Shown here in pieces: positions 8,427 through 61,339 of a stretch of 64,000 nucleotides of DNA. The position numbers were made by a program, and so were the translations under genes. Each line of letters starts with the position of its first letter. The first letter of the stretch is position 1. The notes beneath the pieces were generated by a model. The model made no database searches. It was not told where the DNA came from and saw nothing but the letters and a program-made list of their open reading frames with translations. Origin of the DNA: Parasitella parasitica NRRL 2501 (taxonomy: Eukaryota; Fungi; Mucoromycota); assembly GCA_025201805.1 (NCBI GenBank), contig MU619257.1:136615-200614 (forward strand), read 5' to 3'.

Positions 8427-10683
8427 TTATGTACGTTGTTGGGGAAAAGAAGAGATGTCATTAATGTTGTTGTTACTAGGTGTAAAGGTAGGAATGCCCG
8501 AGGTGGTCAAGGGTGCTGATGGTTTGGTTATACCCAGATTCTCAATTACTAATGGCGATGCGTTTCCTGCTCCTGCTGCCATGGGCATAACAGGCGAGTT
8601 GTTCGAGGCAAACATCATTTGCTTTTCGACTTCTAAACATGCTAGAACAGCAGTTAATAAAAAAGAAAAAAAAACGAATCATACTTTACATCTACATATA
8701 CTTACTGCTAATAAGGTGTTTACCATAAGTGTACTTTTTCAAACCTTGAAGATGAGGTTTGATCTTGGCTACCAATAAATCCCGTTGGTTGCCATCGACT
8801 ACATCAAGCATCTTTTGTACAACGTAGTTGGCATATTGATCCTTCATCATGGACATCAGTGGATAAGATCTACATGGCAGAACATCAGAAGGTGCAGTTG
8901 ATATACTCAGGATACCACACACTTACCCATCAGGTCGAGTTAACAATACTTCTTCAATCAAAGCTTGGCGGTCTTCTTGACATCCGTAGGCAACGCATTT
9001 TTCAACCACATTGCTAGCAAACTTGTGCTTGCTTAACTGAAGCGTATGTCCTCTAACTTTGCTGATAATCAAAGCCTTATCCTTGGGCTTACCGTGTTCT
9101 AAAATGTGCTGGATTACATAGTTTCCGTACTGATCTTGAACCAACTGACTGGTACTCCTATGGAGTTCCTCCAACAAGTAGATCTAGCAAAATCGAACAA
9201 TTAGCATTACATTATTTTTTGGAGGAAAACCCCCCCCCCCCTCTTTCTCTCTCTCTCTCTCTCTCTGTGTTGAACTCTTACTGTTTGCTCCTCAGGACAA
9301 TGCTCAAACATCCTTTGGATTACACGGCAGCCGTAGGGGTGTGTAGCCAAATGGTAGACTTGGCCATAGAACGTATCAATAATGAATTGGATGTGTTGTG
9401 CTGGCACACGTTCAATGGCTTTTTGCACTACATGATTTCCGTTTTGATCTTTGACACACTTGAGAACACAACCATCCAACTCCTGGATCAAAACAGCCTG
9501 TTGATCTGTCAGCACGTACTCGAGTGCTTTCTGAACAACACGACAGCCGTACATCTGCAGCGACAATGACAGGATATGCCCCTCCATTTGCTTGGCCAGT
9601 ACGGTTTTCTGCGCCTGGTTACCGTGTTCAAACAGCTTCTGGATGACATAGTTTCCAAACACATCCGTCATCAACTGCAGACAATTGGGCAAGATTTCAT
9701 CAAACACAAATTGCTTATCATCGCTTGTAGCAGTTTCAAGCTTTTGCTGAATAAACCGACTACCGTGCTGATCGCCACTGAACTCAACAACATGGTTAAC
9801 GATATCTTTGAGTCCAAACTTCTTGTTCTTGTTGTTACGGAATTCTTCTAATAGTGGGCTTCGGATGATGGGAACCATGGGTTCAACAGCAGACACAGGT
9901 GAAGCCACATTGGGCTCATGCATTGGATTGGGTGTCATGGATCCGTTGTTGTTGCGGCTACGGGGAGCAGGACTAGCAGGGGTGCTCGGTAGGGCAGCAC
10001 CAGACGCCGAATAATATGGAGAGGAACTGGCCATGTTACTGGTATTGATATGAGGCAAAGACTGCTGTGCTTGGGACGCATGATGCTGTTGCTGCAATTG
10101 CTGTTGTCGCATCATTTGCTCTCTCAACAATAGTATTTGTTCCTGCTGCATCAATATTTGGCGCTGGCGAGATTGCAGTTGAAGTAGTAAGCGGTCGTTT
10201 GTCAATGAGGATTCCTGCTGGCTTATCATCATGGTAGCGGTGGTGGGAGTGGTTGGTTGACTGAAATCAGCATTAGACATCAAGGACGGACTGGCTCTTC
10301 CAGAAGTGTCGATCCATTGCTGAGGAGGAGCGTGTAAAGGCGACCGCATCATATCCTCATTGAGTTTACCGCCACCTCTGTATTCCAATACATCAGGCGT
10401 ACCGGTTCGATCATGCTGCTGCGGATCGTTGCTATCCCACATTGCGCTGTACCCTTGAGGAGTTTGTACTCTACTCCTATCGGCTTCAAACGAGCTGGTA
10501 ACTACGAAATGTTTTAGTATTCACTGTCTAGATTGAATGGAAATACGGATATATACCAGGAGACATGGTGCCACTCCATGCCAACGAGCTATCGCTCAAA
10601 ACAGCGTCCAAGCTTTGCGGAGCTGGCGGCGGAGCCATTCCATTGCCGCCTTGTTGGCTCATCCATTGGTAGTAGCGCTGTTG

Positions 10684-10714
<31 letters not shown>

Positions 10715-11815
10715 AGATGTCTTTTTGACAGAGCGTCTTCGTGCTAAGTATCCAGTAGCCCCATCCANNNNNNNNNNNNNNNNNNNNNNNNNNNNNNAAA
10801 AAAAAAACAAAAAAAAAATAGATTTAAGGAGTTGGGTGTGGATGATTAAGGAGGGCAGACAGATGAGCATCTAGACTCTATTTTTTCTTCTTCTTTGGTA
10901 TGGGGAACTCTTACCTTTTCATTCAGACTTGTTTGGTTCATACTCGTCAAGAGTTGGCTGTATTCGTAGTCCTCGATTTGTCTTTGGTGAGAGTTTTTGA
11001 AATGGTGGTGTGCAGCAGGTGGGGTAGAGTTTGCACGAGGCGGAGGCGATGCTACGTACTTGCTGCGAACAGGAGGCGACATGGGCCGTGACAAAGGGAA
11101 ACGTGCATAAGGCTGTTGTTGCTGTTGCTGTTGCTGTTGGAAATCTGCACCACCATCGTCAACAAAAGCAGGAGTTGACGAATTCTCCACTCCAGAAAAC
11201 ACTGAAAAATAGCCTCGATGATGGCTCTCGTCGATAATGCGACTACTGCCACTTGCGTTGTTGTTCAAGCCTCGTTTTGGTTGATGCGGTGCTTGAGAGA
11301 AAGGCGAGGCTGAACGCTGATAGTTCTACGTTAAGAATATTAGAGTCCTGTTTGATTTTTTAATAATGGCCCTCTTACATCAGGATGAAACTGTTGCTGT
11401 TGATCGGATGACGTCCAAGCGCTGTTCATTTGATACGTGGATGGAGAGATAAGCGTATCGTTCTGTTGCTGCTGTTGTTGGTCCACGTTAAAGTAGCTGC
11501 TTTCATCCAGCTGGTTGCTACCATTCCCTTGAAAACCTAAAACAAAATTCAACAAGTTATGATTGGGCATTACGCTATTGGGCAACCGGTACTCACTGTA
11601 GTACTGATCAACACTAGGACGACTTTTGTTGTTCTTGTTGTTTGACCATACTTGACGAGAAGAAGAAGGGTCAAATAGAGGAGAAGCCAGTGGCTGATTG
11701 CTGGTCTTCCATGCATTGTTTCTTAGAAAATTGACATGTTCTTCTGTATTCGCATTCTGCGTAGGGAACTGAAACTGATGAGGGTCAGGAGGTGCACTGC
11801 TGGGTCTCGGTTCAA

Positions 11816-11862
<47 letters not shown>

Positions 11863-12063
11863 AAATCCAGGTATAATTCATTTTCAGGCTCCATACGGCC
11901 TCTCATTAAAGCAGCAAGCTATCAAAGGGTTAGTCGTTATCATCATCATAAACAGTGATCCTTCCTGTACCTGGCCCTGGGGCTGATTTCGAGCTATTGG
12001 TTGTTGTAAATCGGGTTGTCCTCGAGAAGTAGAGAAATCCATCGCAAACGACTGTTGCATCAT
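8427..12063 (-). CDS. Pumilio/PUF RNA-binding protein (PUM1/2/Puf3 type) with long Q/N-rich N-terminus, multi-exon
   Basis: [11 protein letters not shown] followed by 8 Puf repeats with recognition sets SR..Q, NY..Q, CR..Q, NH..Q, CR..Q, NY..Q, SN..E, NY..Q, ending [11 protein letters not shown]. Confidence 0.93.
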
Positions 12064-12779
12064 AAGTTCTATATGCGTACGCGTGCTTCACACTAATTTT
12101 TTTTTTCAAGATATTGAACTATATACACAATGACAACTCTATGTATGTTGCAACAAAGAAAAGAAAACAAGAAGGAAGAAGAAAAGAAAAGAAAAAGGGA
12201 TGAGGGAAAAAAAGGGAGAGAATTACACACTTATTTATATCATCTCACCAGTATGCTTACAGAAGATGTCAGGATTACCATCCAACCACCTTCTCGTGTC
12301 TGTGTGCCTTAGTTTCCATTTGTTACACCCTTTTTTGGTGTGTATCCACGTTCACCATGGGAACACCGTTTGTTACTATCCTTTACCCTCCTGCCTTGAT
12401 ATTTTTCTCACTGTAAAACGGTTACCGCATTAACTTGGTGCGTCGTATGTATTCAAGTAGTCAATTTAAATTATAACCGTATAATTTATAGTATGGAAAT
12501 TGTGTCGATTCATTTTCATTTGCGAGTTTTTAAAAAAAGGTTGATTTAAGGTTGCTGTAGTGCATTTGGGCCGCCGTATTTGGCGAGGTGTATCAAGATT
12601 ACGTTCAAGGTATTCAGGTATAAGCCAGAGAATCTTCCTGACCCTACGTTATTGTAATAAACAGCATGTCTAGTGCATTTTTTGATTCCATTGACCCTCA
12701 ACCAGGAGGGACGTAAAATAAACCGCACCAAAAAAAAAAGTGTAAAGATATGGAAAAGAAACGCACGAGCAATTTTTAT

Positions 12780-14394
12780 TTATTTAATACCACCGTTCTT
12801 GACTGTAGCAGCCTTGCACTGGATAGCTTCGCCAGATGCAGTTCTAATGAGGAGAGGTTTATCACCGTAAAGAGCAACAAGGTCGTCGTTTGTGTGCAGT
12901 TCAGGCTGAACTGTTTCCCAGTACTTCTTTTTGGGGTTCAAGACCTTCTCGGGCTCTCCTTCTTGACCTTCAATGTAAACTCTGTCTCCAGGTTTGACCT
13001 TTGATGTATCAACAGGGGCTAACAGTTCAACTGCAGAGCCGTCAGCAGCAGAAGCACACAAAACCATACCGTAAGACTTGATGCCACGCATACTGGCAGG
13101 CTTCAGGTTGGTTAAAACAAGAACATAACGGTTCTCCATTTCCTCAACAGGATACCACTTTACGAGACCTGACACAATAGTGCGAGGCTCCTCTTCTCCA
13201 ACATCAATTTCTTCAACATAGAGCGAATCAGCATCTTTGTGCTTCACGACTGTCTTGATCAAACCAACACGGATATCGATACGAGAAACGACAGGTTGAT
13301 CAGTCTCGGCAGGAGCAGCTACATTTTTTATAGGATGAGTAAAAAAAAGAAAACTATCAAATCAACATGGCCACACTTTACCAGCAGGCTTCTTTTCGGC
13401 CTTTTTCTTCTCCTTCTTGGGTTTACCGCCTTCAACAGGACCCTTCTTGTTTTCCTTCTCTTTAGAAGCAGCCTCAGGTCTCTTATCGTCCTTGCCGCTG
13501 GCTGTAACAGCCTTATCATCATTACCCTTCTTATCGCCCTTTTTCTACAAACATGTTTGTTACTATTACTATTTGTATATATATTATATATATATATAAT
13601 AGTGCTAAAATAAACTCACAGCAATAATAGGAGCAGCAGGTTCAGGGACATTATCAAGATTGATGTCAACCAAAGGGAAATCTTCAGTTAAATCGTTAGC
13701 TTTGATAACAGTGTTTTGGATAAGATCGAACCATCGCAAAGTGTTGGGAGCAGAAGTGGCCTTGATGTTTTTCTGTTGAGCGATAATTTAGCCCCATGAG
13801 CCCCAACGCTTATTTGCATACACAAACACTTACACTGTGAGAGAATAAAAGACCAAAAATAACGACATCCACAATAGTTAGGTGGTTATTGATGAAATAT
13901 GTCTTGGTGCTTAAATGCTGATTGATTTTCTTCTATGGCATTTGTAAGTAAAATTGCATGGGCACATATACACTTATCATTCTTACTTCAATGTTGGAGA
14001 CAATTTCCTTCTTGCCAACTCCTCGAAGAGACTGGTTGGCAAAAGACAGCCATTCTTCAACCTACAAATTGTTAGTTTTGGGGTCAACATGTTCCAGTAT
14101 AAAATGAAGGCAAATACCTGAGCTTGTTCAGCTTTGTCAGCTCCTAATAATTCAGCCTTCTTAGACCTGGAAACAAGAGCCTTGATAATAGTGTTAGGAG
14201 CATCAATTTTTTCGTTGTCGACCTATACACACAAATGTTACTTTTAATCCGCAAAGCATGCATCACAATCTTTCAAATCTTACCTCTAAAACAAGTTCGG
14301 CCGAATTTTCAATCTTGGCATCAGATTGAACCAATTTAGAGACCAACAGAACTTCACTAGCGTTTTCCTTGGGAATGCGAAGAACAACAGCCAT
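12780..14394 (-). CDS. ARC1: Arc1/AIMP1-like tRNA-aminoacylation cofactor (GST-like N-terminus and EMAP-II/OB tRNA-binding domain)
   Basis: VSRIDIRVGLI...KHKDADSLYVEEIDVGEEEPRTIVSGL...NLKPASMRGIKSYGMVLCAS...LNPKKKYWE; upstream exons give LRWFDLIQN (GST-C); Lys-rich linker. Confidence 0.88.
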
Positions 14395-14840
14395 TTCGAA
14401 TAGTTTAACAGAAAGCACACAAGAAAGGAATATTTCCTTTACGCGTTCCAGCAAGATGAGAAAAAAAAAAAAAAAAAAAAGAGAGAGCCTCCGAGAAAAA
14501 GAACGGCCGTGGCTTGGATGAATTGATTTGATTTCAGTGCTCATGTTAACATGAAACAGATGCAAATACACAATACTTTGCATGAAAATAAGTCTGATCC
14601 TGGCCGGCGATAGCTTTATTAGCATTATATTGCCATCATGTTAGACTACGTTCTTGGTGAATGAAGCTGAAAAATACTTGAATCTGTAGATTTTCCGCGC
14701 ACTGGATGTGTATAAGTTGGCATGCAAAATGTGCATTCTTTGAATGGCTATTTTAAAATTCACACAAATGAAAAAGGTAATTTCTACAACAGCTTTATAA
14801 GGAGACATCAAAGTAATTAGAAGGTATTGANNNNNNNNNN

Positions 14841-14879
<39 letters not shown>

Positions 14880-15759
14880 GCATGGAATAATAATCAGCTT
14901 GCATAAATCTGTATTCATGGATCTTGCAAAGCTGTGAAAATGCGACCCCAAACGATAGATTCAACTGTGCGGTCATGGCGGAAATCTTAACTGTAGAAAC
15001 GACAGTTTTTAATGCATAATAAATATGTACTTTTTTTTTTTATTTATTTATACACGGTATAAGGGCATACAAAAACTGCCTACAAAACAAAACACTTTTA
15101 TGTAAAAAGGGAGTCCAAAAATCATTTAGCCGCTTTCGACAAGTGTCCCGAACCAAATCAAATTGCAGTGATGATAGCATTAGACATTCTTAGCTGCATG
15201 CATTTATGACAGTATGTGGACCCTTAATTCCATAAAATGTCACTGCCACAATTTTTTGAGCCAGAAATTCAATTGCATGACAACGATCTTCATGGGAGGA
15301 CATTGCACGTACTATGGTACGACTATCAAGATCCGATCATTGGTGCAAAAAGAGTACACGAGCTATTTTAAAAGTTTATATACACAGTAGAAACTAAAAT
15401 TCTATCCAAAATCAAGGGGCATAATGGGATTTGCGTTATTGACAATATAGATGTTGAGTAGTCGCCGGAAAAAAAAAATTACTACGAGGCAGCTTGGGTC
15501 TTCAAAACTATAAAAACTTAAAATCGATCTCCCTGATAGCCATTGGCCCAGTTGGAGTAACATGTAATTAACATCGAAGTCTGTTGTGCTTCTTTGACCA
15601 ACGTCACAACCTATTGTGTGTGAGTGTGCTTGATATCTGTGTCCAATATTCTTTTTCTGTCGCACAACCTTGCTGTTGTATTTTTCTCCTTTTTCTTCTC
15701 TTTGATTCTCTTTTGCCCCTTCAGTTTCTTACTAGTTCGGATTTTTTTCTTGAGCAAAC

Positions 15760-48819: not shown

Positions 48820-49080
48820 TTTTGCATTCTACTGAGAGAAAAATGAACAAAGCTTTGACAGATATGCTTGTCTTTACAACCTTGTTGCAAGCCATTTTGA
48901 CACGGAGTGTAACAACACACTGAAATTTATAATATATTAGACACAAGCATTATGAAATCCATAGATTAGAGATAACAGCAATTGAAAATAATACACATAA
49001 TTGATAAATCGATACCATTATTAAGATGATAATTTCGAAATTTGTATTGGGATGTTGGTATAGAAAAAAGAAAGGTATAG

Positions 49081-51262
49081 TTATGCTCTATGAATAATGC
49101 ATCGTTTAACCGGATCAGTAGGTTCTGCCGAATTCCATTGAGTGATAGTTGAAAAAGATACAAATGCCATACTATAGAAAGAGTTATTTTTGTTAGTATG
49201 CTTTGAACTGTTCGGTAAAGGAATCGCATTACCATATTATGCCAAACAAAATCAGCGCAAAATTAGCGATGCGTCGAGTTGGAGGCAGCTCCAAAGCTTT
49301 CAAGTGGAATAAAGGGGGGAAAACAAAGCACAGTGGGATGCAAAACAAGGCGCCAACCAAAGACACAAACTTGTCCAGTTTATCCTTTGAGCCCACAATG
49401 CCGATGCCTGCACATAAAAATACAACGAAAACTCGAAACACATTCTTTTGCCACTTGACAATGGCATTGTTCTTTCCTGATTTGGTAGTGAATAGCCCGT
49501 TCTCCATGATGCGAATAGCAGGAAATAGCTGCAGCGGTATCGACAGGCAGATGGCCAGCGAATAGAGCGTCTGGATAGATGACACCATGGGATCTTTGCT
49601 GGGTAAATTTAGCAAAATGATGGTCTGCACATTCTCGCCAAATGTCATGTAGGATAAAGCGCCCATTGTGATAAACAAGCAAGTGATCACAGTAAGCGCT
49701 CTTGTTAGCACTCGAGGGAACTTTTTGGGATCCCTCATGGATTCAGTGATGGGAATAACTAAGAAAAAAAAAAAGGTTAGCAAGGCAGTCATCTCCTTGC
49801 ATGGCCCACTAACCTAGTCCAATGCCTTCAAACGTAAATGCTGCAGTACCAAGGAATAATGGATAGTGCAGTGGATTCCACATTTCCACCTGAACCATAC
49901 CAATCGTAAACAGCTCTTTTATATCATAGTAGACCAAATAGATCAGCCCAATCACGATAAAGACGTCTGCAATCAGTGCAAAAACTGATAGTCTCTGGAT
50001 CTTTCTGATCATGGCCAGCGGAATGAAAGCAAAGCTTTGCGCCAGTATCAAAAGATGCATAGGAATCGTAACTCGACATTTCGAAAAGGTAAGGACCAAT
50101 GACTGCAAATTTTCTGCAACAAAGATCATGTAAGCACATACGAATCCAATCTGTGACAATGTGATGGCGACAAGCACAGCAACCCGCATACGAGACCCAT
50201 ATAACACACCTCCCATGTCCCCAAAGCTGGCCGGAACAACCAGGCGAGTTTGCACAAGCAACAGAAATGACCACAACGAAATCAACGCCCATGCAATGAT
50301 GGCAAAGGTGGAGAAAACAAGGCCTCCATTGTAGAATCTGAATGGAAACAGGTCAGACTACACGCCATGCCAAGCCATGTGGAAATTACTTACGCTTTAG
50401 GCAAAAACATAATACCTGTCGTGACAAATGACTTTAGCAATAGAAACATGGCCTTGCCAGGTGTTGCTTTTCCTTGCAAAGTCTGTCCTGGACGTGATCT
50501 CGACAGCAGTGGCATCGTCTCTCGAGCTTGCAATTGCTTGTATTGTATGGGAACTAGCGGTTTTTTCGAGTTTGCTGAGGTGGGCAATGGCAAACCTTGA
50601 GTCGTATCGGATGCACCGTAAGAATACGATGCATTATTTAAAGGTGGGCGGTAGGCCATGATGCCACCCTCAGGAATGCTGTCTTCTTCACTGCTTGCAT
50701 CGTCTTCGCTCGAGTGGTAGGAATCAGACGAGGAATTAGACGAAGATGATTCTGCATCGCTCAGATTTTCACCGCCAAAATGGCCATACAAGCACAGAAA
50801 CTCGACAAAACTGGATGTAACAAAATTAGGCGGCTTCTTTCCTTGTTGCGCTGCTTTGCTTAAAACGTAGTGGCGCCTGAACCCACCCGGCTGCTTTAAC
50901 GATTGCAATGATACGTCGATCGTTGGCTCACGGTGAGCAGGTAACGATACACTTTGAGTTCGATTTCTCTTTTGTTGCTTGTCCTCTACTTGAGCTGTCC
51001 ATTTGTAAATTTCGTCCAGAATAGATCCGCCAGGTAAGAGATGGTGTGTGTTGTACGTTGGCTGCTTCTTCTCATCCTGCTGCTGCTTAAGTTTTTGCTC
51101 TTTTTTATGTTGCTTCTGCTGTTTGCGCTGTTTGCGTTGTTTACTTGAAGGATACGGCGGTATCAGAGAAGACGAGGATGATGCAGGGTGGTAAACAAGG
51201 TGGCGTTTCACTACTTTGGCTACTTGTTCGACAGGCAAGTCAATGGTTACTGAGCGTTCCAT
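49081..51262 (-). CDS. Vacuolar amino-acid transporter, Avt3/Avt4 family, multi-exon (start uncertain)
   Basis: PGGFRRHYV, FVEFLCLYGHFGGE, LLLKSFVTTGIMFLPKA, SQIGFVCAY, FTFEGIGL, PLQLFPAIRIME, LDKFVSLVG; the last exon ends at 49081. Confidence 0.9.
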
Positions 51263-53032
51263 CTGCTAGATTTGTTTCAATGCCAAATTGTCTGTTGAAT
51301 GTGTCGTCAAAAGAAAAAAAGAAGAATTTGCGAAAAAAAAAAAAGAGGAAAAAAAAAATCAAAGGCTCACATTCTCATCAAACGTCTCTTACCACTATCA
51401 CCCTACTGCTACTATCTCCCCAATACACACACCTCTGCTTACTACTCTCACCCATGGTACAAATGACTTGTGACGGCCTGTGCTTTTGAAATCTTGCAAA
51501 TCGCTGCTTTCATGCCATATCGTGATCTCTTACATATCTCTATTAATCAATTGCGTTCATTCTACTTTCCTGCTGTCATAACTTCAAGTTGGAATCATCA
51601 TGACATTACTGTTTTGTAAGATTTGTGTGTGTGGTAATCTTCCATTTTCGCAGTGGCGAGTTTTGAGCGACGACGACGATTTGGTGGATGAAAGTCCGAC
51701 TCTTTTTTTTTTTTTTTTGGATCTTGGAGGTCGGTTAGTGAAGCAATTTGATCCTTTTCTTCGCATTTATGTAGATTATTCAATAAATTGTATATAAAAC
51801 AGACAATACTCAATAATTGAAAATAGTACAGAATTGCATTGCTCATAAATTGGTATAGCTCTTAAAAAAATAGCTCACCAAAAATTTTGCATAACATTGA
51901 ATAAAAGCAAAGCATTATTATTAGCCAAAAGTCACAATACATACTATGTAATATGCAAATAAGCGTTTTGAAGCAGTGCAGAAACGTTATATGCTCATTT
52001 TGTTTCAGTAACTATCTTAATGAAAAGTTTTATTTTTTGACTGAAAAATCCGAAAAACTAAATTTTGGCGATTTTGATGCATAGTTGTAAGGCTTGGAGG
52101 ATCAATTTTGCGAGATTTTCAATTTTTGAGATACTGTGATAGGAAGTAGGCACAGAGTAAGAGTGGTTGTTTGGTGCAAATACGAGCTCTTAAAACTGCA
52201 TAAAACGGCCAAAATCAAGCTTTGAAAATCATACACTTTTGGATGTTTTAGGTACATGTATCAATATCCACTATACAAAAAGACTCTATACCAAAGTTTT
52301 TGTCTGCTTGGATACATTGCTACGTCTATCAAGCATATTCTGTAACACATTGCTTGGGCCAATTTTATGAAAATGGGCTTGTTTGAGTCGACTGAATTTG
52401 GTTACTCCACCTTCGAAAAAAAAAAACAGCAGCCAAATGAAAAGTTGTACATAAATTTGGCAGCGTGTTTGAAAGTAAAAAATATAGATAAAACCTCATT
52501 ACCATTCAGTATTGAAAAACTGCATTTATACTTGATTAAATGCACGGAATAAAGTATTAAAAATACTTTTGAAGTATGGACATTCTGTAAATTTTGTCTG
52601 CTGATTACCATGACAATATTGGTTCACCGACTTTAAATCGAATTATCAACAAGATAAAGCAAATATGCTAAAGGACCACACATAAAATTGAACTGTGTTT
52701 TAGGGTTTGCATAAAACAGAAGATCGACTATTATAGGATACTGTTTTTTCCTGCCATGTAAAAAATTGCAGAAAATCTGAGTAAGCCTACGTACAAACAC
52801 GAAAGACGTTGATCTAAAACCGATATTTTTATTACGCCAATGAACTGAACATCCGTCAGCTCTAGTTTCCTTGTGTGAAACGATGAGGCAATCTCAGTGA
52901 CTTGCAGCAACCATTTGGTAATGGATATATTGCAAATGGGTTACTTTGCATGTTACAAAGTTGTTGCAAACGAATTAGAACTACGAACTGCTTTCTCCCT
53001 TTTTTTATTTATTTTATTGAAGCATTTCAGTT

Positions 53033-54032
53033 ATGGAAGACGAAGAAGGTACGGGTTTGCTTGTATGATGACGAGTCATAGATAATTAGAACGTATTCCA
53101 GAGATCTGTAGAGTCTGCCGCTCGGAAGGCACCGTCGACCAGCCTCTATTTCATCCTTGTAAATGTGCAGGAAGTATTCGTTACGTTCACCAGGACTGGT
53201 AAGCAGCCTTCTATTATTAAAAGCAGTTGCATGATAGTAAAGATGAACAACATTAGTTTGATCGAATGGTTAACGCACAGTCGAAAAAAGTACGTCAAAT
53301 ACGCAGCCCAAACATATTCATGTACTAAATCGGATCCGTAGATATTGCGAACTGTGCGAGCATCCCTTTACATTTACACCAGGTAAAAAGATTGATTTTT
53401 AGACCGAGTGATGGCAATGAATTGACGAAAATCATCTAGTTTATCGACAAGACATGCCAGATGTGTTACCTCCCAAGCTATTTGTACGGCAATTGAAGAA
53501 AAAGCTCGCGTTTGCCATCACAACGACATTACGAGCAATCTTGGTCTCTTGTATTTGGCTGATACTACTGCCGTATTTCACTATTTGGATTTGGAGGCTA
53601 TACTTTTCAATGGGCACTAATTTATCAAAGCATCTCTCACGATTGCAGCGGCTGAGACCAAGGATTGGATTCTCTAACACTGTGCGGGAAGAGATGTTGA
53701 ATTTCGACTATAGCTTACTCAACAGAACCAGCACAAGTTGGCTGCAGGATTACAGATCCCGATTTTCGCTGCAGTAAGAAGATTACAAACTGTACAAGAG
53801 TTCATTATGTAACTAACAAGCCCTTTCAGAACATTTTTATCAGATTGCTTCGAAGGCCAAATCATAACCTGCGTTGTCGTGGTGATTTTTGTCGCTGTGT
53901 TTTTACTGAGGGAATGGATTGTGCAGAATATACCAATGGAAGCCCCCATCATTGGAGATGACGATGCAGTAGAAATGGCCATTGACGACGACGAAGGGGA
54001 GCCTCTGCCTCGCCAACATCATCATCACAATC

Positions 54033-54119
<87 letters not shown>

Positions 54120-57100
54120 CTGCTGACAACTTGTTTGACAACCATTGGGATCATCATCAACAGGAGCCTCTGGATTTCGATCAGAGACCTCCCTCACCTG
54201 TCGCTACCACCTGGTTCGATAATGGTGAATCCAGTTCAGCAAATCTCATATTTTCCAACAACGAGATCTACAACAGACCCTCCCGTGCAACGTCCATGCC
54301 TCCATCGTTCTCATCTACAAGCTCTTTTCATGACTATGACGAAGAGCACCAGAGCAATGAGGGAAAGCCATTAGAAAACCGTAGATCAGCAAGCATGGAG
54401 CCATTTATCGACACCACGCCTTCAGACTATCTTAACAATAATGGCCACGACGAGTCATCTGGCTTTGCTCGAGGACATCCACCTAATGCACCGAGACTGA
54501 GACATGCTGAGGCTCCAACTTTTATCAGACCTGTGCTTGAAGTATTAGAAGAAGAGGAGGACCAACAACGACAAGCGCCACACGCAGCAGCACCCATCAG
54601 AGCACAGCCAATACTACCACCCCCACCCCCACCCCAGCCAATGATGAATGATGCAGATGACGATGACGATAATGTCGAAGAATTCGAAGGTGTCCTAGAA
54701 GCTATCGGCATGCAAGGCAGTCTATGGTCATTGCTGCAAAACTGTGCTTTGATGGGGTTGCTGATCGCGCTCAGTCTTGGCGCTGCTGTTTGGATCCCAT
54801 ACTTGATAGGCATGCTATTCATTATGACAGAGATCCTGGATGTAATCCGTATACCATTAAAGCTGACACGACTGATAACAGATCCTGTCGTAGACTTTTT
54901 ATTCTTTGTTTGCACCGACTATATTGCACCATGGCTTGCGGACGCCTATACTCAACATTTGCGCCCTTATTGGATTGCATTCTCCACTTGGCACATATCA
55001 CAAAAGATATTCATTGCGTTCACGTACATTCTGGGCCGTGCTCTCTCACTCGCTGATCCCCTAAGCTCTAACACTCCAGCCTCCTTGATATCATCATCTT
55101 TTGAAAATATACCCACATCACCATCAGCAGTAGCTTCCGACTCCACCTCGACATTTATCACATCGATGGCTAAATTTATTAATCAGACAGAACCCATGCT
55201 GGAATCGGCTATTCACCGGTATCAGCTGCTTGCCACAGGTCAGACTGCTATGGACCGTTTCGCTTGCATTTTCGTGGGCTATATTATCATAGCCTTAGCC
55301 AGTTGTTGGTACCTTTCGCGATCCCCCAACAACAGCAACAGCAACAGCAACATGGCTGCCTTGGGTCGCACAGCGCAAGAGGCTATTCGCCATCAAGGAA
55401 TTATCTTCAAGGTGGGCATGTTCATCAGCATCGAGCTTGCTATGTTTCCTATTGTTTGCGGTTTCCTGCTTGATTTATCAACAATGCCCTTATTTAAATC
55501 GGCTTCGTTCATGGGTAGATTCATGTATCTAAAATCAAATCCTGTGCCGTCTGTATTCCTGCATTGGTTCCTAGGCACTGGCTTCATGTTCTTGTTCGCG
55601 GTCTTGGTGACATTATGTCGTGATGTAGTGCGTCCAGGCGTAATGTGGTTTATTAGAGACCCCAACGATCCGCAGTTCCATCCCATTCGAGAAATAGTTG
55701 AAAGACCCGTTTTCTTTCAACTGAAGAAGATTGGAGCCAGTGCTCTGATCTATCTTACGGTGATAATAGTGGGCATTGGCGGCCTAGTTCATTTCCTCAA
55801 CACAGTGGCCGGACACATCTTACCGCTGAGGTGGAATCTATCGTAAGTGTCTTTTTTTTTTTTTCACATAATCCCATAATCGTTTGAATTTATCGAGTTA
55901 ATGTTTGTTTAACACATTTAGTAGAGTTCCTTTATCAGTAGTTCCAGTGGATTTAATTGTAATTCACGTTGGTATTCCTGCTATTGTCAACTATTTCAAG
56001 CCAAAGCAGATTATCAAGCAGGTGTTTGTCAAATGGATTACCATGACATGCCGTCATTTGAGATTATCGTCATTTGTGTTTGGCGGTAGAAAGGCAGACG
56101 AGGAAGGGACCTTGGTATATCACAACTGGGTGGCATGGCTGAAGCGCACAAAACCTACGCACTATCCTGCGGATGGTGCCATCGATGACATTATAGAGAG
56201 CCAAGTATCTTATTTGTGGGAGGGCCAATTACTGCGTGTTCCTCGACATGATAGCGTACCTATTATCGAACGTCGTCGTATGCTTGTGCCTGTTGATAAC
56301 TTTACCCTTGAACCTCTGGATGAAACTGAAAGACGATTGGGACATCCTGCTGCCAGCGCACCTGGTGGTGACGAAGTAAACACTGTCATTGTCTACAGCC
56401 CTCCTCATTTCAAAGAAAGACTGCTAGTTTTTGTGGGCTTTATGTGGTTGTCTATGAGCATATTTTTCTGCGCCATCACCGTATTGCCTGTTCTCCTAGG
56501 TCGCTACATCTTTGAGCACAAACTGCATCTTGATACCGAGGTACATGACATTTATTCGTTCGTTTTAGGTGGCTGTATCCTGCTGTTCATGGGTATATTG
56601 ATTCAGCAATGCTACAAATCTGTCAAGGATATCAGCGCACAATCCACATGGTCTGACTTGACGCTGTCAGTATGGGACCATGTCAAGCAATGGACTTTAT
56701 GGCTTTCTCGATGGTCTTTCTTTGTATTATCGTTTGGTGTTCTCGTACCAATGTCGCTTGGAATCATGATCGAGTTATATCTTGTTCTGCCGTTTGTTCA
56801 GATTACTCCAGATGCACCTTCGATCGAAATATTGCCCATGTGGGCTGCTGGCTTTGTGTGCCAAGTGATACTCCATGGATTTATACAAGTTGTTCCCAAT
56901 AATAAGTTGAAGGAGATTCTTGAAGATGTAAGTATCAGTATTTTAACTCACAACGTGCCCGCTTATCCAGCTCCTTCGTGTAATAGGTATTCCAAGGGGG
57001 TATCAATGAAATGAAGGTTGAATCATGTTGCACAAGGCTACTGGGCCCATTACTGTTTGTCACCTTGAATGCTAGCTGTCTCCCATTCTTGCCAGCTTAC

Positions 57101-57370
57101 ATCAATATGAAGATTCTCGACATGAGTCGCAAGTATTTCAAACCATGCTTATACACATCAAGTCTGACTAATATGTTGTTTTCTGTAATAGTTGAGCAAA
57201 ACGCTGAATTGTCAATGAAGATGCTTCAAATGGCTTATCCCATTGCTCTTATTGGCATTGGAGGCTATTATCTCGGCAAATTTGGTAGAAGGATTAGAAC
57301 TAGGTTGGTTCAAAACATTAGAGAAGACAACTATTTGATAGGCAGAACACTGCATAACCTGGATCAATAA
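53033..57370 (+). CDS. SSM4: ERAD E3 ubiquitin ligase Doa10/MARCH6 (RING-CH plus multi-TM), multi-exon
   Basis: ICRVCRSEG...[40 protein letters not shown]; [19 protein letters not shown]; C-terminal [15 protein letters not shown]. Confidence 0.95.
54032..54118 (+). repeat. Coding (CAA)n(CAG)n polyglutamine tract in DOA10
   Basis: About 29 consecutive Gln codons. Confidence 0.9.
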
Positions 57371-57467
57371 GCATTTCACTCACATACGCTCAATGCCAAC
57401 ATTTACAACATGACATTATATACCTCTTCATTGTAAAATAAAAATAAAACAAAAAGGCTTCATCTGT

Positions 57468-59889
57468 TTATTTAAAATGCAATTCTTTACGCAGGCAAGA
57501 TAATTCATCAACTGAAAGCTGACCAGGAGCAGCAGCTACAGCCATGGTTGGGTGTGTTGCAGGGCTCAGAAACTTGTTGGCAACTCTTGAAAACCTGCCA
57601 TCAGCGCCCATATTGATCAAAATAATCTCCTTGTTCTTTTCAGGATCAATTTGGCGTCTAAATTCTTCTAGCTTGATATTATCGTAAAAGCTTTTCGCAA
57701 ACCCGACCAGTTTGATAACCCCTTGGTGCTTGTAAACCTCAAATAGGCGTCGTGCTTGCTCATGTATTCTTTTCATCGCATCATCAGACCAAGAAAGTGC
57801 GTGCTTGGGGTCATGGAAAGAGAAAATAATCTTTGTGTTATCGTACAGCTGGTTCAATTCCATGATTGCTTGCTGTTTATTTTCAGGCAATGTGCATGAT
57901 TCCATGTCAATGTAGTCGCACCCCCACCGATGGCCCCATCGAAGAAGGGTTTCGTAAAGATCCACTTGGGTAGAATCAAATTTTCCAGCTTGAGGCTGTG
58001 TACGAACAGTGTATATGATAGGCAGGTGCGTCAATTGTCGAAGATGAGCAAGCTGTGTACCAACATTGGCAACCCAACCATCCATGTCATCTTGAGGGGG
58101 CAAATGATCCACTCTGAATTCAATAGCATCGGTACCTTCAAGCCATTGCTTCATCAGTTCAGGCAAAACACACTGGTAAGATGATATTGTTGGTGTTATG
58201 AACGTAGTCTGCAAGCTACCGAGAGGACTGATATGGCGAGAATGAGCAAGCATGGTAATGTTGATAAAGTGTAGTGCATTACGAACAAATTGAAGATCGG
58301 CTTTTTCCAGAGGCAAGACTACATACTCGTACCATATATCGTTGCCAGTAAAAATCTTTGTTGAACCTGCCTGCCCAGTAAAATTGATTTTGATCTGTTT
58401 GTCTGCATTGTTGCCAGAAAGCTTCAATCGATGTTCGCTCTGAGCGGCGATTTCAACGCCAAAATTTTTGAACAATGTTGAAAGAGCCCTGAGATGTGAC
58501 AATAGATTGTGTGAATCGATAACAATATCAAGAGCAAACGTGTTCATAAAGTTGTCTTCTCGGAACATGCTGTTTGCTTTAGCTGTACTAGTGCTATCAA
58601 AAGACGACGGAATGTATTTTTGAAGAACATGTTTGATAGCAGCATCAGGTACATTTGAAGGCTTGTTTTCCAGATTCGAGCCAATATCTTTCAATAGCAC
58701 AATTCTCTTTTGAACACCTTTATTCTTCTTATCCACCTTCATAGTGTCCATAATTCGAGCTAATTCCAGTCTTCTTTGAGAGTCTTGATCAAACTTGACA
58801 GGTAACTCATACAATTGCAAACATTGCGTAAGTCGGGCAACCACGCCGGAATCGCAGTAGCCAAGATAATGCGAAAGTTCTGCTTCGTGTATCAAACCAA
58901 GGGAAACGCATTCACCATGAAGCCATTCAGGAGATAAATGGGCCTCATAAGCGTGTCCAAAGGAATGTCCAAAATTCAACAAACCACGAACGCCATCCTC
59001 TCTCTTGTCTCTAGTGACAATATCCGCTTTGAAAGCAGCACAGGCACATACTACATTAATTAACATTGCTTTATCGGCATCTATATGGATATATACATGT
59101 ATATAAATGACAAATCAATGGCTTAAATAGTATACATAGATAGGTACCTAGAACCTTTTGGTCGCTGAAACCAAGTACTGATTCAATTTGAGCTTTTCCA
59201 TTTTCAAGCTTAAGGAAGTCGGATTCACTCGAAATAGCAAATGTCTGTAGAAAGTATTAGGTAATCAACTTATGCCTGACAACAATTACTATGCGTACCT
59301 TTATTATTTCAGCCATACCATTGGCAACTTCTCTTTTGGGAAGCGTCTCCAGCACAGAAAGATTCATGTATATGCGCTTCGGCTGCCAAAAACTGCCAAT
59401 CAAGTTTTTACCATGGGCTGTGTCAATAGCTGTTTTGCCGCCAATGCTAGAATCAACCATAGCTAGCAATGTAGTGGGTATCTGAACAAACGGTACACCA
59501 CGCATAAATGTTGCTGCAACAAAGCCAACAAGATCTCCTACTACACCGCCACCTAGTGCAATAAGACAAGTGTCTCGCGTGCATTTTTCATTTAATAAAA
59601 AGTCCTCGATAGATGCTTTTGCATTGCGAGACTTGGATTGTTCACCACAGGGCAGAATGCGAGTCAGAAGCCTTTGATTTGGCTTCAATTGTAGCTGAAT
59701 CAGTTGGAATAATTCGCTCAGGTAAAGTGGTGCTAGCTGGGTGTCAGTAATGATCACGTAATTAGATACGTTATTAATGCTTTCAACCAAATCTAACGCT
59801 ATATGACTCATCAAGTTATAACCAATTTGAATAACATGTGGCACATTCAACAAAGAAATTGTTGTAACATTGGATATATCATAAACCAT
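57468..59889 (-). CDS. Bifunctional 3-dehydroquinate synthase / type I 3-dehydroquinate dehydratase (AROM-derived; no EPSPS, shikimate kinase or shikimate dehydrogenase), 3 exons
   Basis: DHQS: [65 protein letters not shown]. DHQase I: EFRVD, IIYTVRT, YIDME, SFHD, VIKLV, INMG..G..SRV.N, AAPGQLS, then stop. Confidence 0.88.
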
Positions 59890-61339
59890 CGTAGGAGATT
59901 ATAATGTATAAATGGAAAAGAAAGTTCTTATAATCTTAATGTATTATGCTAGGACAATTTATATTATATGCTTCAAATATTGTTGTTTGTTAAACTCGTA
60001 ATAAGCCGGCATGGTGCTCATTCAAGCAGTAAAATACATCTTTCTTTCAAGAAATAGAGCCGCTTTTAAATATTCCACATACAGAATGTCTGCTTTTTTT
60101 GGTGTTTTACTTATGCTGTTAGTGATAATGTTGCCAGTGCCAACAATAACTTTCCTGTTGGAGGCATTGGCTTATTCACATGGCATAAAGCCTGATCTTA
60201 TTTTTGGTATGGGCAGCAAAAACTCGTCAAATAGGCAGAACCAGAATATAGCAAGAGCAAGTTGCATCCTGATGAAAGGCGAGGAATTATATTAAGTTCT
60301 CTTCCAAAATATCTGCTCTTTCTTTACTTGGGACTTGCAGGCATTTTTTCAATGGATCTGATTTTATTGAGCAAACTTGAATCTTGTTGAAGCTGTTTGG
60401 TTTGAAGCTGCTGTCCACTTTAACGTCTAAATTAGTTAAATCAGGAAAATGAACCATTTGGTGTTCATATGAGGCAGCTAATTGATAAAAATTTTGACAG
60501 TGTCGAAGAGAGAACTGAAAACAATATTTCTGTTTTTACTTGTATTATATCTTTTGAGACGATTTGTTTCCATTAAAGTCAAAGGTATCCATTTTAGTAG
60601 AGTCTTTTTTTTTTAATTCTCTGCAAGCAAAATAAAGAGAACAGGGACAGTGCCTCGATGGGTTAAAGCGACCAGAATACTAGGCATGGTCAAGGGTTAA
60701 AGACAGATTGTAGACCTACTGCAACCCATTGCACGCAACTGAAAAGGAAGCCTACCGACTCAAATAATGCTGTTCTACCCTGATGTTTTAGCGATAATCA
60801 AGCAAACAGAGATCATCATGATTGAGACTTCTAATTAACACTGGATACATAGTAGTTACGTCTGTCGTTATGAGTGCTTGTACCTGTCATTAAGAAGGCT
60901 AAACAGGTTCCCAAAATATGACAAGTTGATAGTTTTTATTCTGATGTCTCGCTCTCTGCACTGTCAAGAGCACTTTATCAAAACAACGCAGCTTGATCCT
61001 TAACAAGCCATTCGACAAAGATGAGATTGTTCATTACGACCTGTTCAGTAAGGCCGACTCAAGTTTGTCTTTTTGGAGTGAGTATTTGATAATCCAGACA
61101 GCTCTCGGCTCAAGTAGGATATATTGCATGCGCACCTTTTAACTGCTCAGAGATGGCTTGTATAAGCTTTTACCTTTCAAATGCAAAAAGCAGATTCGAA
61201 TCGTCCATCTGCAAGTCTTTTTAATTGTCAGACATTAATTGTTTGTTATGATTATCTCACTAAACAACAATAGCCTCTTTTCTCCTTTCTTTTCTTTTCT
61301 TTTTCTTTGTATATTCTGATCAAAGAGTTTGATGCAAGT

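Follow-up and report, generated by a model that had tools for sequence, protein, structure and literature searches.

Among multi-enzyme fusions AROM is a textbook case, and it is also a candidate target for antifungals. The window analysed here, a stretch of 64,000 nucleotides from contig MU619257.1 of Parasitella parasitica NRRL 2501, holds a gene in which DHQ synthase (DHQS) and type I 3-dehydroquinase (DHQase) occur together, apart from the other enzymes of the fusion. The gene, here termed mini-AROM, raises the question of what such a reduced fusion descends from, whether it is still an enzyme, and what it does beside a complete AROM.

Gene structure

Mini-AROM lies on the minus strand at 57468-59889, and its three exons total 2298 nt, or 766 codons (Table 1), close to the spliced gene of about 765 aa described in an earlier note on this DNA. 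Exon 1 holds the GGGVVGD NAD motif together with Asp146, Lys152, Asn162, Glu194 and Lys197, and shares 58% identity with the first exon of the ARO1 gene in the same genome. The DHQS part of exon 3 holds Lys250, Arg264, Asn268, His271, His275, His287 and the VDKKN motif, and is 49% identical to ARO1. Intron 1 is supported by an ARO1 intron at the same codon position and by ortholog proteins that read straight through; the RNA contigs of run X1 cover a part of the gene that takes in neither intron 1 nor the transcript ends. Intron 2 matches an ARO1 intron in position and phase, and in a contig of run X1 position 59148 is followed directly by 59080, with 67 nt skipped, which is the exact splice of this intron. 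The deposited model for the locus, P0001, is flagged partial and has a different splice at intron 2.

Table 1. Features of the mini-AROM gene, in positions of the window
Feature	Position	Strand	Description and basis
Exon 1	59299..59889	-	N-terminal Rossmann-type half of DHQS, 197 aa; ends GMAEIIK, then GT
Intron 1	59245..59298	-	GT..AG, phase 0, directly after GMAEIIK; basis is homology only
Exon 2	59148..59244	-	97 nt; start of helical C-terminal half of DHQS; homologous to ARO1 exon 2
Intron 2	59081..59147	-	67 nt, GT..AG, phase 1; spliced contig and ARO1 intron
Exon 3	57471-59080	-	C-terminal DHQS half, tether, kinase remnant and DHQase
Exon 3, first part (C-terminal DHQS half)	58623..59080	-	Pfam match, ARO1 alignment
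Ser/Thr-rich tether	58548..58622	-	Predicted disordered; sits at the place of EPSP synthase in AROM
Putative shikimate-kinase remnant	58242..58547	-	About 100 aa, strand-helix-four strands-helix; no Walker A motif
Type I 3-dehydroquinase domain	57471..58241	-	Schiff-base Lys in VIKLVG, His in SFHD
Stop codon TAA	57468..57470	-	Sequence

The spacer between the DHQS and DHQase domains measures about 130 aa, somewhat more than the linker of about 120 aa proposed earlier. Its tether has a pLDDT below 50 over exon-3 aa 159-171, is poorly conserved, and varies in length among orthologs. The DHQase domain terminates at the DHQase/SDH boundary of AROM. The stop codon had been placed right after AAPGQLS; the frame in fact continues for 14 further residues, which correspond in the alignment to the last helix of the AROM DHQase. 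The 3' end of a convergent MARCHF6-like gene lies about 100 nt beyond the stop codon.

Catalytic domains and active sites

Profile and database searches were made exon by exon; where alignments and trees called for a full-length protein, the database proteins P0001 and P0002 took its place. In Pfam, exon 1 matches DHQ_synthase (PF01761) at 8e-48, whereas exon 3 matches both DHQS_C (PF24621, at 1e-28 over exon-3 aa 3-119) and DHquinase_I (PF01487, at 1e-46 over exon-3 aa 304-527). Among family models, the AroB and AroD equivalogs of NCBIfam match best: for TIGR01093 (aroD), with its cut-off of 139.3 bits, exon 3 reaches 149.8 bits, and for TIGR01357, the cut-off of which (305 bits) applies to the whole protein, the exons scored apart reach 215.8 and 124.2 bits. 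The Pfam matches to both domains and the NCBIfam match to type I DHQase exceed their cut-offs.

The domain scans bear out the complete DHQS and complete type I DHQase reported in the earlier note, with all named motifs present. GMAEIIK, FGHSFGH and LHGE map to Glu194, His271, His275 and His287 in the numbering of A. nidulans DHQS, which is transferred here by the offset of the 1DQS alignment. The DHQS set is intact (Zn ligands Glu194, His271 and His287; substrate-binding Lys, Arg and Asn; GGGxxGD NAD motif), as is the DHQase set (Schiff-base Lys; general-base His; substrate-binding Glu, Arg, Asp, Arg and Gln; TIM-barrel fold). Across 18 mini proteins and 28 AROMs, every catalytic or ligand position checked is invariant (20/20 in DHQS and 16/16 in DHQase). 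Of the solved structures, 6HQV and 7U5S, both of AROM, are the nearest relatives; the DHQase model matches AROM structures with Z of 32-34 and S. typhi DHQase (1QFE) with Z of 27.2 and an rmsd of 2.3 A over 238 residues. The DHQase domain is 38% identical to that of the ARO1 in the same genome.

Two consecutive steps of the pathway are thus kept with intact active sites, and three later enzymes are lost, both as previously proposed. The Pfam scan finds neither EPSP synthase (PF00275) nor SKI in the gene, and no DNA-binding or other added domain. An SDH-like part is absent from the protein by ARO1 alignment and by a genome-wide search for Shikimate_dh_N, and what appears to be left of the shikimate kinase (SK) is devoid of Walker A.

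Origin of the spacer

Most of the spacer is predicted to be a folded remnant of the AROM shikimate kinase, shrunken and catalytically inactive. This origin is new in the present analysis, and its basis is partly a predicted structure. With 6HQV, the model of linker plus DHQase (pLDDT 93, pTM 0.93) aligns over 328 residues, at 866-1288 of that structure (Z 34.3); with C. albicans Aro1 it aligns over 311-316 residues, beginning at residue 857; chains of DHQase only align just about 245 residues, from model residue 106. A single superposition places the remnant on the SK domain, and the DHQase on the DHQase, of the solved AROM structures. By hhalign, the linker matches the C-terminal part of SK at E 2.8e-4 and its last 47 columns at 3e-5, and the N-terminal 70 residues of the remnant give a non-significant sequence-profile E of 0.1-0.3. 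The Walker A motif (G....GK[ST]) is absent from the window protein and from 36/36 ortholog linkers but present in 119 of 120 AROMs. In a fold search with the linker alone, just generic P-loop or flavodoxin-like matches were returned, at Z of 6.4 or less, within background.

The earlier suggestion that the linker is eroded EPSPS or SK sequence holds for SK, through hhalign and the superposition, and not for EPSPS. Profile-profile comparison with the EPSPS columns of AROM gave E of 0.12-0.21 (reversed controls 0.4-0.6), and Foldseek returned many EPSPS/MurA chains at E of 0.15-0.9, none of which stood in the top 50 on re-alignment. An EPSPS origin was dropped in favour of a kinase remnant because the model of linker plus DHQase superposes on AROM from the first kinase strand. 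A conserved AGST loop was considered as a degenerate Walker A and rejected: hhalign sets the AGST strand opposite a later kinase strand, and the structural kinase match begins about 55 residues earlier. Judging from the model, the kinase remnant probably packs against the DHQase as in AROM and serves solely as structural support.

Descent from AROM

Mini-AROM is a descendant of the pentafunctional AROM. The presence of a full-length ARO1, which the earlier note had proposed to check, is established: a complete pentafunctional gene of 1604 aa lies on another contig (C40) and contains the only EPSPS and SDH domains found in a profile search of the genome. A split AROM, in which the window gene would be the sole DHQS/DHQase and the other domains would lie on a separate gene, is thereby set aside. 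Both mini-AROM introns lie at the same codon positions and in the same phase as in ARO1, and mini-AROM is therefore a duplicate made at the DNA level.

The trees agree with this paralogy. The mini proteins form a single clade (100% support), which the concatenated tree places as sister to the AROMs of Mucorales and Umbelopsis (SH-aLRT 94). Mini-AROM evolves 3-5 times faster than ARO1, and the stem branch of the clade is 0.95 substitutions per site long. The DHQS-only tree set the mini clade beside two basidiomycete AROMs, a placement taken as a search or long-branch artefact because a tree constrained to group the clade with Mucoromycotina AROMs has a slightly higher likelihood on the same data and is not rejected (p-AU 0.62).

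Distribution, selection, and expression

No fewer than 18 named proteins have the same architecture, in Mucorales that range from Mucor to Lichtheimia and Syncephalastrum; with the same gene order, it recurs in six or more genera whose genomes were assembled independently. Orthology of the mini proteins is backed by this conserved gene order, and their mutual identity drops to about 40% while 36/36 checked positions stay invariant. Mini-AROM has probably been kept beside an intact AROM since early Mucorales evolution. A word search that reached down to 34% identity, and may miss distant relatives, turned up DHQS-DHQase fusions in the Mucorales-type group only; it found no Phycomyces protein of this type, and the same tool did find the Phycomyces AROM. 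A full-text literature search returned no description of an architecture of DHQS, kinase remnant and DHQase.

A survey of Mucorales with dN/dS had been suggested; the architecture is widespread among them, and dN/dS within Parasitella is 0.08-0.27. Measured against the other Parasitella assembly (dS about 0.7), dN/dS is 0.08 for the N-terminal part of DHQS, 0.16 for its C-terminal part, 0.12 for DHQase, and 0.27 for the linker and likewise for the kinase remnant; mini-AROM is under purifying selection. Between the two assemblies the mini-AROM protein is 78-83% identical and the adjoining permease 98%. An unusual divergence of the locus was considered and rejected: over all 11 kb of the locus, DNA identity is about 81%, and the divergence of mini-AROM is therefore ordinary. 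The gene is transcribed and spliced in one run, X1, in which low-depth contigs lie over it; the run is RNA-like, and its RNA nature is a guess.

Predicted enzyme and role

In all likelihood, mini-AROM is a bifunctional enzyme that converts DAHP to free 3-dehydroshikimate (DHS). The protein would be cytosolic, and both catalytic activities are predicted from conserved residues. An NAD+/Zn2+-dependent DHQS domain would cyclise DAHP to 3-dehydroquinate, a flexible Ser/Thr-rich tether would stand in for the deleted EPSP synthase, and the dead shikimate-kinase remnant of 100 aa would pack on the next domain as in AROM, giving it structural support. The type I dehydroquinase, via a lysine Schiff base, would then dehydrate 3-dehydroquinate to DHS. 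Because the protein ends where DHQase once gave way to SDH, DHS would have to be released.

As to its role, we tentatively propose, at somewhat less than even odds, that mini-AROM provides extra DAHP-to-DHS capacity regulated apart from ARO1 and gives a free pool of DHS. The blend of predicted enzyme and proposed role is, on balance, the best explanation of the locus, and is held with reasonable if not strong confidence. The only recognisable consumer of DHS in the genome appears to be the SDH domain of ARO1. Evolution 3-5 times faster than that of ARO1 makes an altered specificity or altered kinetics possible. A role as flux booster leaves the retention of DHQase beside DHQS unexplained, ARO1 already having one.

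A dedicated phenolic-acid branch, in which mini-AROM would supply DHS for protocatechuate, gallate or another DHS-derived product apart from chorismate, was the proposal of the earlier note, and is possible though rather unlikely. The retained steps end exactly at the branch-point metabolite, the three steps that commit flux onward are lost, and fast evolution is typical of specialised paralogs. The Mucoralean fungus Phycomyces is reported to form gallate from DHS (Werner et al. 1997, cited in PMC11566741). Shikimate dehydrogenases can oxidise DHS to gallate (PMC3057006), so the SDH domain of ARO1 could be the downstream enzyme. The organism here, however, is Parasitella parasitica, and Phycomyces, the only Mucoralean known to form gallate from DHS, appears to be without mini-AROM, since no such protein was found although its AROM was. 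Nor did profile searches of the Parasitella genome reveal a recognisable DHS consumer for such a branch besides ARO1: a PF01261-type (dehydroshikimate-dehydratase-like) gene, a type II dehydroquinase and a second shikimate-dehydrogenase domain are all absent, the sole Shikimate_dh_N match being ARO1. PF01261 is the family of the fungal dehydroshikimate dehydratase, and we know of no phenolic product of Parasitella.

The genes around mini-AROM also speak against a phenolic branch. The neighbours encode a MARCHF6/Doa10-like ligase, an Aa_trans permease and a DPBB_1 protein, and a gene cluster was rejected as a hypothesis, a shikimate-related gene being absent beside mini-AROM in 6/6 genomes looked at. 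The transporter of the amino-acid/auxin-permease family adjoins mini-AROM from Lichtheimia to Rhizopus and Parasitella. A Mucorales-specific specialised pathway that starts from free DHS and runs through downstream families so far not linked to DHS is an unlikely reading; in such a pathway mini-AROM may work with the adjoining transporter, and the dead kinase domain might have gained a ligand-binding or regulatory role.

It is improbable that mini-AROM is a non-enzymatic regulator or scaffold, as QutA and QutR are. Hawkins and co-workers reportedly described these as AROM-derived non-enzymatic proteins, which sets a precedent, and the kinase domain of mini-AROM is predicted to be dead already. 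Since DHQS domains form dimers, mini-AROM might conceivably pair with ARO1. Invariant active sites amid an overall identity that falls to about 40% across deep Mucorales divergence are nevertheless hard to reconcile with a protein that does not catalyse, and an added domain, DNA-binding or other, was not found. Very improbable is an altered substrate for both domains, such as an amino or other DAHP analogue in an aminoshikimate-type pathway: other cyclisations of sugar phosphates have repeatedly been taken on by DHQS-like enzymes, and the long stem branch and faster rate would suit such a change, but all substrate-contacting positions checked are identical to those of AROM, and the AroB and AroD equivalog models match best. 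Finally, a decaying duplicate or an assembly artefact collapsing the middle of ARO1, both raised in the earlier note and seemingly favoured by the partial, differently spliced deposited model, is refuted by open frames, purifying selection, a spliced RNA contig over part of the gene and a separate intact ARO1, the artefact being ruled out because the same architecture recurs in many independent assemblies.

Significance

Mini-AROM is a natural experiment in which the AROM fusion has been reduced to two non-adjacent catalytic domains and then retained. It suggests that a kinase domain can be kept after its catalytic activity is lost, apparently to support DHQase, which bears on the dependence between domains in AROM. 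The Mucorales include the human pathogens Rhizopus, Mucor and Lichtheimia, and a second predicted route from DAHP to DHS is to be considered in any inhibition of the early AROM steps. If free DHS feeds something besides ARO1, this would point to an unrecognised branch of aromatic metabolism in Mucorales. As a compact natural module predicted to lead from DAHP to DHS, mini-AROM may also find use in metabolic engineering.

Comparison with known systems

AROM/Aro1, known from the structures of Chaetomium thermophilum (6HQV) and Candida albicans (7U5S), is the direct ancestor of mini-AROM. The two share their first two introns, the identities of 49-58% in DHQS and 38% in DHQase, identical active-site positions and, in the mini-AROM model, the same packing of SK on DHQase. 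Unlike AROM, mini-AROM is without EPSP synthase and shikimate dehydrogenase, has its kinase domain cut to about 100 aa without Walker A, is 766 rather than 1604 aa long, evolves faster, and cannot carry flux past DHS.

QutA and QutR (qa-1F and qa-1S), the regulators of quinate catabolism in ascomycetes, are truncated AROM descendants beside the intact enzyme. They correspond to the DHQS-EPSPS-like and SK-DHQase-SDH-like halves of AROM, their catalytic residues are lost, and QutA has gained a DNA-binding domain. Mini-AROM is likewise a truncated AROM descendant that persists beside the intact enzyme; it differs in keeping the outer catalytic domains intact, with the middle deleted, and in having no DNA-binding domain and, in contrast to QutR, no SDH-like part.

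The plant bifunctional enzyme (2O7Q) is also a shikimate-pathway fusion with a type I DHQase, and gives a structural match with Z of 23. It fuses steps 3 and 4, whereas mini-AROM fuses steps 2 and 3 and is without SDH. The monofunctional AroB and AroD of bacteria and their bifunctional AroK/AroB (NCBIfam PRK14021 and PRK13951) belong to the same catalytic families; in the bacterial fusions, it is the kinase that is joined to DHQS.

Gene structure and domain content

The short AROM gene is real, conserved, and expressed. It runs on the minus strand from 59889 to 57468 of the window and comprises three exons with 2298 nucleotides of coding sequence (766 codons). In domain scans with each exon as a separate query, exon 1 hits PF01761, the N-terminal 3-dehydroquinate synthase (DHQS) domain (8e-48), and exon 3 matches both the C-terminal DHQS domain (PF24621, 1e-28, residues 3-119) and type I dehydroquinase (DHQase; PF01487, 1e-46, residues 304-527). 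Exon 3 also scores 149.8 bits against the aroD equivalog-domain model TIGR01093 (cut-off 139.3). These matches bear out the earlier note's description of a complete DHQS joined to a complete type I DHQase, with two corrections: 14 further residues precede the stop that was placed directly after AAPGQLS, and the stretch between the domains measures about 130 residues rather than about 120. The C-terminus of the protein coincides with the boundary between DHQase and shikimate dehydrogenase (SDH) in AROM.

The deposited Parasitella parasitica protein model of the locus (P0001, flagged partial) agrees at 100% identity wherever it covers the gene. It uses another intron 2 donor (window 59081-59147), giving GTYLS where DADKA is expected, and terminates early at RRQIDP, about 55 residues upstream of the real stop (window 57471-57640). 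The present three-exon model is the one backed by an RNA contig and by the orthologs.

Features of the short AROM locus and of related loci (the Remark column carries sequence context)
Feature	Sequence	Positions	Strand	Remark
Exon 1	window	59299-59889	-	ends in GMAEIIK, then GT at once
Exon 2	window	59148-59244	-	
Exon 3	window	57471-59080	-	then TAA
MARCHF6/Doa10-like gene	window	53879-57370	+	about 100 nt to the short AROM 3' end
Aa_trans (PF01490) permease	window	49229-51262	-	
Aa_trans permease	Lichtheimia (L018)	13071-15447		
Aa_trans permease	Rhizopus stolonifer (L019)	12707-14527		
Aa_trans permease	other Parasitella assembly (L007)	9991-12169		
DPBB_1 (PF03330) gene	Mucor circinelloides (L008)	8948-9771		
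DPBB_1 gene	Lichtheimia (L018)	8817-9713		
DPBB_1 gene	Syncephalastrum (L020)	8910-9261		
T-rich run after ARO1 stop	own assembly (G000), contig C40, locus L006	6010-6100		poly-Phe open frame
Type I DAHP synthase	own assembly, C160	22840-23858		
Type I DAHP synthase	own assembly, C8	232971-234066		
Type I DAHP synthase	own assembly, C70	144398-145492		
Type I DAHP synthase	own assembly, C152	62298-63764		

Expression

Five contigs from one public run with a presumed RNA label (X1) lie on the locus almost without differences. A contig bridges 59148 to 59080, and the 67 nt that it skips begin with GT and end with AG on the minus strand; this is exactly intron 2, and the run therefore contains spliced RNA of the short AROM gene. 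The contigs leave intron 1 and the transcript ends uncovered, and their depth is 2-5, whereas the 3' end of the neighbouring MARCHF6/Doa10-like gene reaches 94 (about 20-fold). One contig (depth 3.5) lacks 2 nt at window 58953, 13 nt from its end, which if real would shift the frame of the DHQS coding sequence; the gap is probably an assembly error.

Descent from AROM

The 32.8-Mb assembly contains DHQS and DHQase matches at two places each, the short AROM gene and contig C40, and C40 also has the sole EPSP synthase (EPSPS) and the sole SDH match of the genome. The product of the C40 locus, at 1604 amino acids, is a full pentafunctional ARO1, so the short gene is a paralog and not half of a split AROM. 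The long T-rich run just downstream of the ARO1 stop is likely a low-complexity 3' flank.

Both introns of the short gene correspond to the first two introns of ARO1 in codon position and phase, which points to DNA-level duplication of an intron-bearing ARO1. Identity to ARO1 is 58% in the exon 1 DHQS part, 49% in the exon 3 DHQS part, and 38% in the DHQase part, and the BLAST alignment begins some 30 residues before DHQase, within the connector that links kinase and DHQase in AROM. A tree of concatenated DHQS and DHQase sequences (18 short proteins, 28 AROMs) groups the short proteins in a single clade (100% support) on a long stem (0.95), sister to the Mucorales and Umbelopsis AROMs (SH-aLRT 94) within Mucoromycotina. 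The DHQase-only tree also places the clade next to Mucoromycotina AROMs; DHQS-only trees place it next to two basidiomycetes, but the likelihood rises when a DHQS tree is constrained to unite the clade and the Mucoromycotina AROMs (p-AU 0.62). Separate ARO1, common intron positions, and phylogeny together uphold the earlier note's proposal of an AROM paralog. We conclude that the duplication arose within Mucoromycotina, no later than the base of Mucorales, with the exact node uncertain because the stem is long.

Conservation and selection

Twenty DHQS positions are invariant in 18/18 short proteins and in essentially all 28 AROMs: the NAD motif, Arg130, Asp146, Lys152, Asn162, Glu194, Lys197, Lys250, Arg264, Asn268, His271, His275, His287, and the KK of VDKKN. 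The numbering is that of Aspergillus nidulans DHQS and is consistent with the offset of the 1DQS alignment. Sixteen DHQase positions, including the Schiff-base Lys and the His of SFHD, are likewise invariant, while overall identity among the short proteins goes down to about 40%.

Relative to the other Parasitella assembly (GCA_000938895.1; about 19% DNA difference across the locus, dS about 0.7), dN/dS indicates purifying selection in the N-terminal (0.08) and C-terminal (0.16) DHQS parts, the linker (0.27), and DHQase (0.12); values against Mucor, where dS is saturated, are similar or lower. The short protein evolves faster than ARO1, with a Parasitella-Mucor identity of about 70% versus 94%. 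Over 11 collinear kilobases (window 48998-60049), DNA identity between the two Parasitella parasitica assemblies is only about 81%, a divergence far above that usual for strains of one species.

The spacer

The segment directly after DHQS (about residues 153-177 of exon 3) is rich in Ser and Thr, varies in length, and is predicted to be disordered; C-terminal to it, some 100 residues make up a conserved domain. The earlier note suggested eroded EPSPS or shikimate kinase (SK) sequence. Folded alone (37 sequences), the conserved domain has a core pLDDT near 90 and the order strand, helix, four strands, helix. Fold searches with this model gave nothing decisive: Foldseek returned a best E of 0.08 with many weak EPSPS rows, and VIA-align returned generic P-loop/flavodoxin-like folds (Z <= 6.4), APS and adenylate kinases included. 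The EPSPS rows were lost on re-alignment, and the N-terminal 70 residues have no significant match to EPSPS or kinase profiles. EPSPS is removed outright from the short protein.

The kinase half of the suggestion stands. In sequence profiles, the last 47 spacer columns match the AROM kinase end and the kinase-DHQase connector (E 3e-5). Enlarging the profiles extends the match to linker residues 64-155, which pair with the connector and the C-terminal third of the kinase (E 2.8e-4, against 0.57 for the reversed control). The decisive comparison was of a joint model of linker and DHQase (36 sequences, pLDDT 93.3, pTM 0.93) with solved structures; the model aligns over 328 residues with Chaetomium thermophilum AROM (4-362 onto 866-1288, Z 34.3) and over 311-316 residues, from residue 857, with kinase-starting Candida albicans Aro1 constructs. 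With DHQase-only chains the alignment starts at model residue 106 and covers about 245 residues. Thus one rigid superposition places both DHQase and about 80 of the linker's 100 residues on AROM, the latter on its kinase domain. Walker A is absent from the linkers of all short proteins (present in 119/120 AROMs), and the exon-wise scan found no Pfam SKI match. On these results the spacer is a catalytically dead SK domain, reduced in size and under selection (dN/dS 0.27), and the packing of DHQase against it is the probable reason for its retention.

Distribution and gene order

The short architecture is widespread but patchy in Mucorales. A word search of proteins returned 39 with this layout, some as the exon 3 portion only; the named ones belong to Parasitella (second assembly), Mucor (three species), Helicostylum, Thamnidium, Cokeromyces, Mycotypha, Gilbertella, Choanephora, Blakeslea, Rhizopus (three species), Sporodiniella, Backusella, Lichtheimia, and Syncephalastrum. 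Among annotated proteins, AROM but no short protein was found in other Mucoromycotina genera, namely Phycomyces, Spinellus, Pilobolus, Cunninghamella, Gongronella, Apophysomyces, Circinella, Umbelopsis, and others; on this basis absence of the gene there is tentative.

Common neighbours support orthology of the short genes. In Mucor circinelloides and the two Parasitella assemblies, the downstream neighbour is a large, convergent gene for a MARCHF6/Doa10-like membrane ubiquitin ligase. In Lichtheimia and Rhizopus stolonifer that place is taken by an Aa_trans permease gene on the same strand as the short gene; in both Parasitella assemblies the permease comes one gene later. The upstream side has a small divergent DPBB_1 gene in Mucor circinelloides, Lichtheimia, and Syncephalastrum. 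The permease core exons are 80-90% identical across genera, and the adjacency, kept across deep Mucorales divergence, may be simple synteny or may signal a functional connection.

Proposed role

The DHQS domain would cyclise DAHP to 3-dehydroquinate, and the DHQase domain would dehydrate this to 3-dehydroshikimate (DHS), which would leave the enzyme since the protein has no later domain. The Parasitella genome contains four separate type I DAHP-synthase loci. It has no type II dehydroquinase, no SDH domain outside ARO1, and no member of PF01261, the family of fungal dehydroshikimate dehydratase; ARO1 itself is therefore the one enzyme recognisable in this genome as a user of free DHS. With modest confidence, the role is extra DAHP-to-DHS capacity under separate regulation, making a free DHS pool. 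The enzyme possibly supplies a phenolic-acid branch: SDH enzymes are able to oxidise DHS to gallate (PMC3057006), and Phycomyces forms its gallate from an intermediate early in the shikimate pathway (Werner et al. 1997, as cited in PMC11566741). Phycomyces, however, appears to lack the short gene in its annotated proteins, and none of the present results supports the earlier proposal of a dedicated source for phenolic acids.

Comparison with known systems

Full-text literature searches found no paper describing the DHQS-dead kinase-DHQase architecture, and PMC9394408, which surveyed EPSPS architectures in fungi, would not have covered it because that work was built on EPSPS-containing proteins. 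Ortholog database names are automatic ("3-dehydroquinate synthase-domain-containing protein", even "pentafunctional AROM polypeptide"). Three points are new: a dead kinase domain as probable scaffold, introns common with ARO1, and a Mucorales distribution that is wide but patchy. Judged by its residues, the short protein would work like AroB and AroD combined. It is a derived paralog outside the pentafunctional AROM family, of whose five defining domains three fail (EPSPS, active SK, and SDH). QutA and QutR are truncated AROM descendants whose catalytic residues have been lost; the short protein is likewise a truncated descendant persisting beside AROM, but it retains its catalytic residues.
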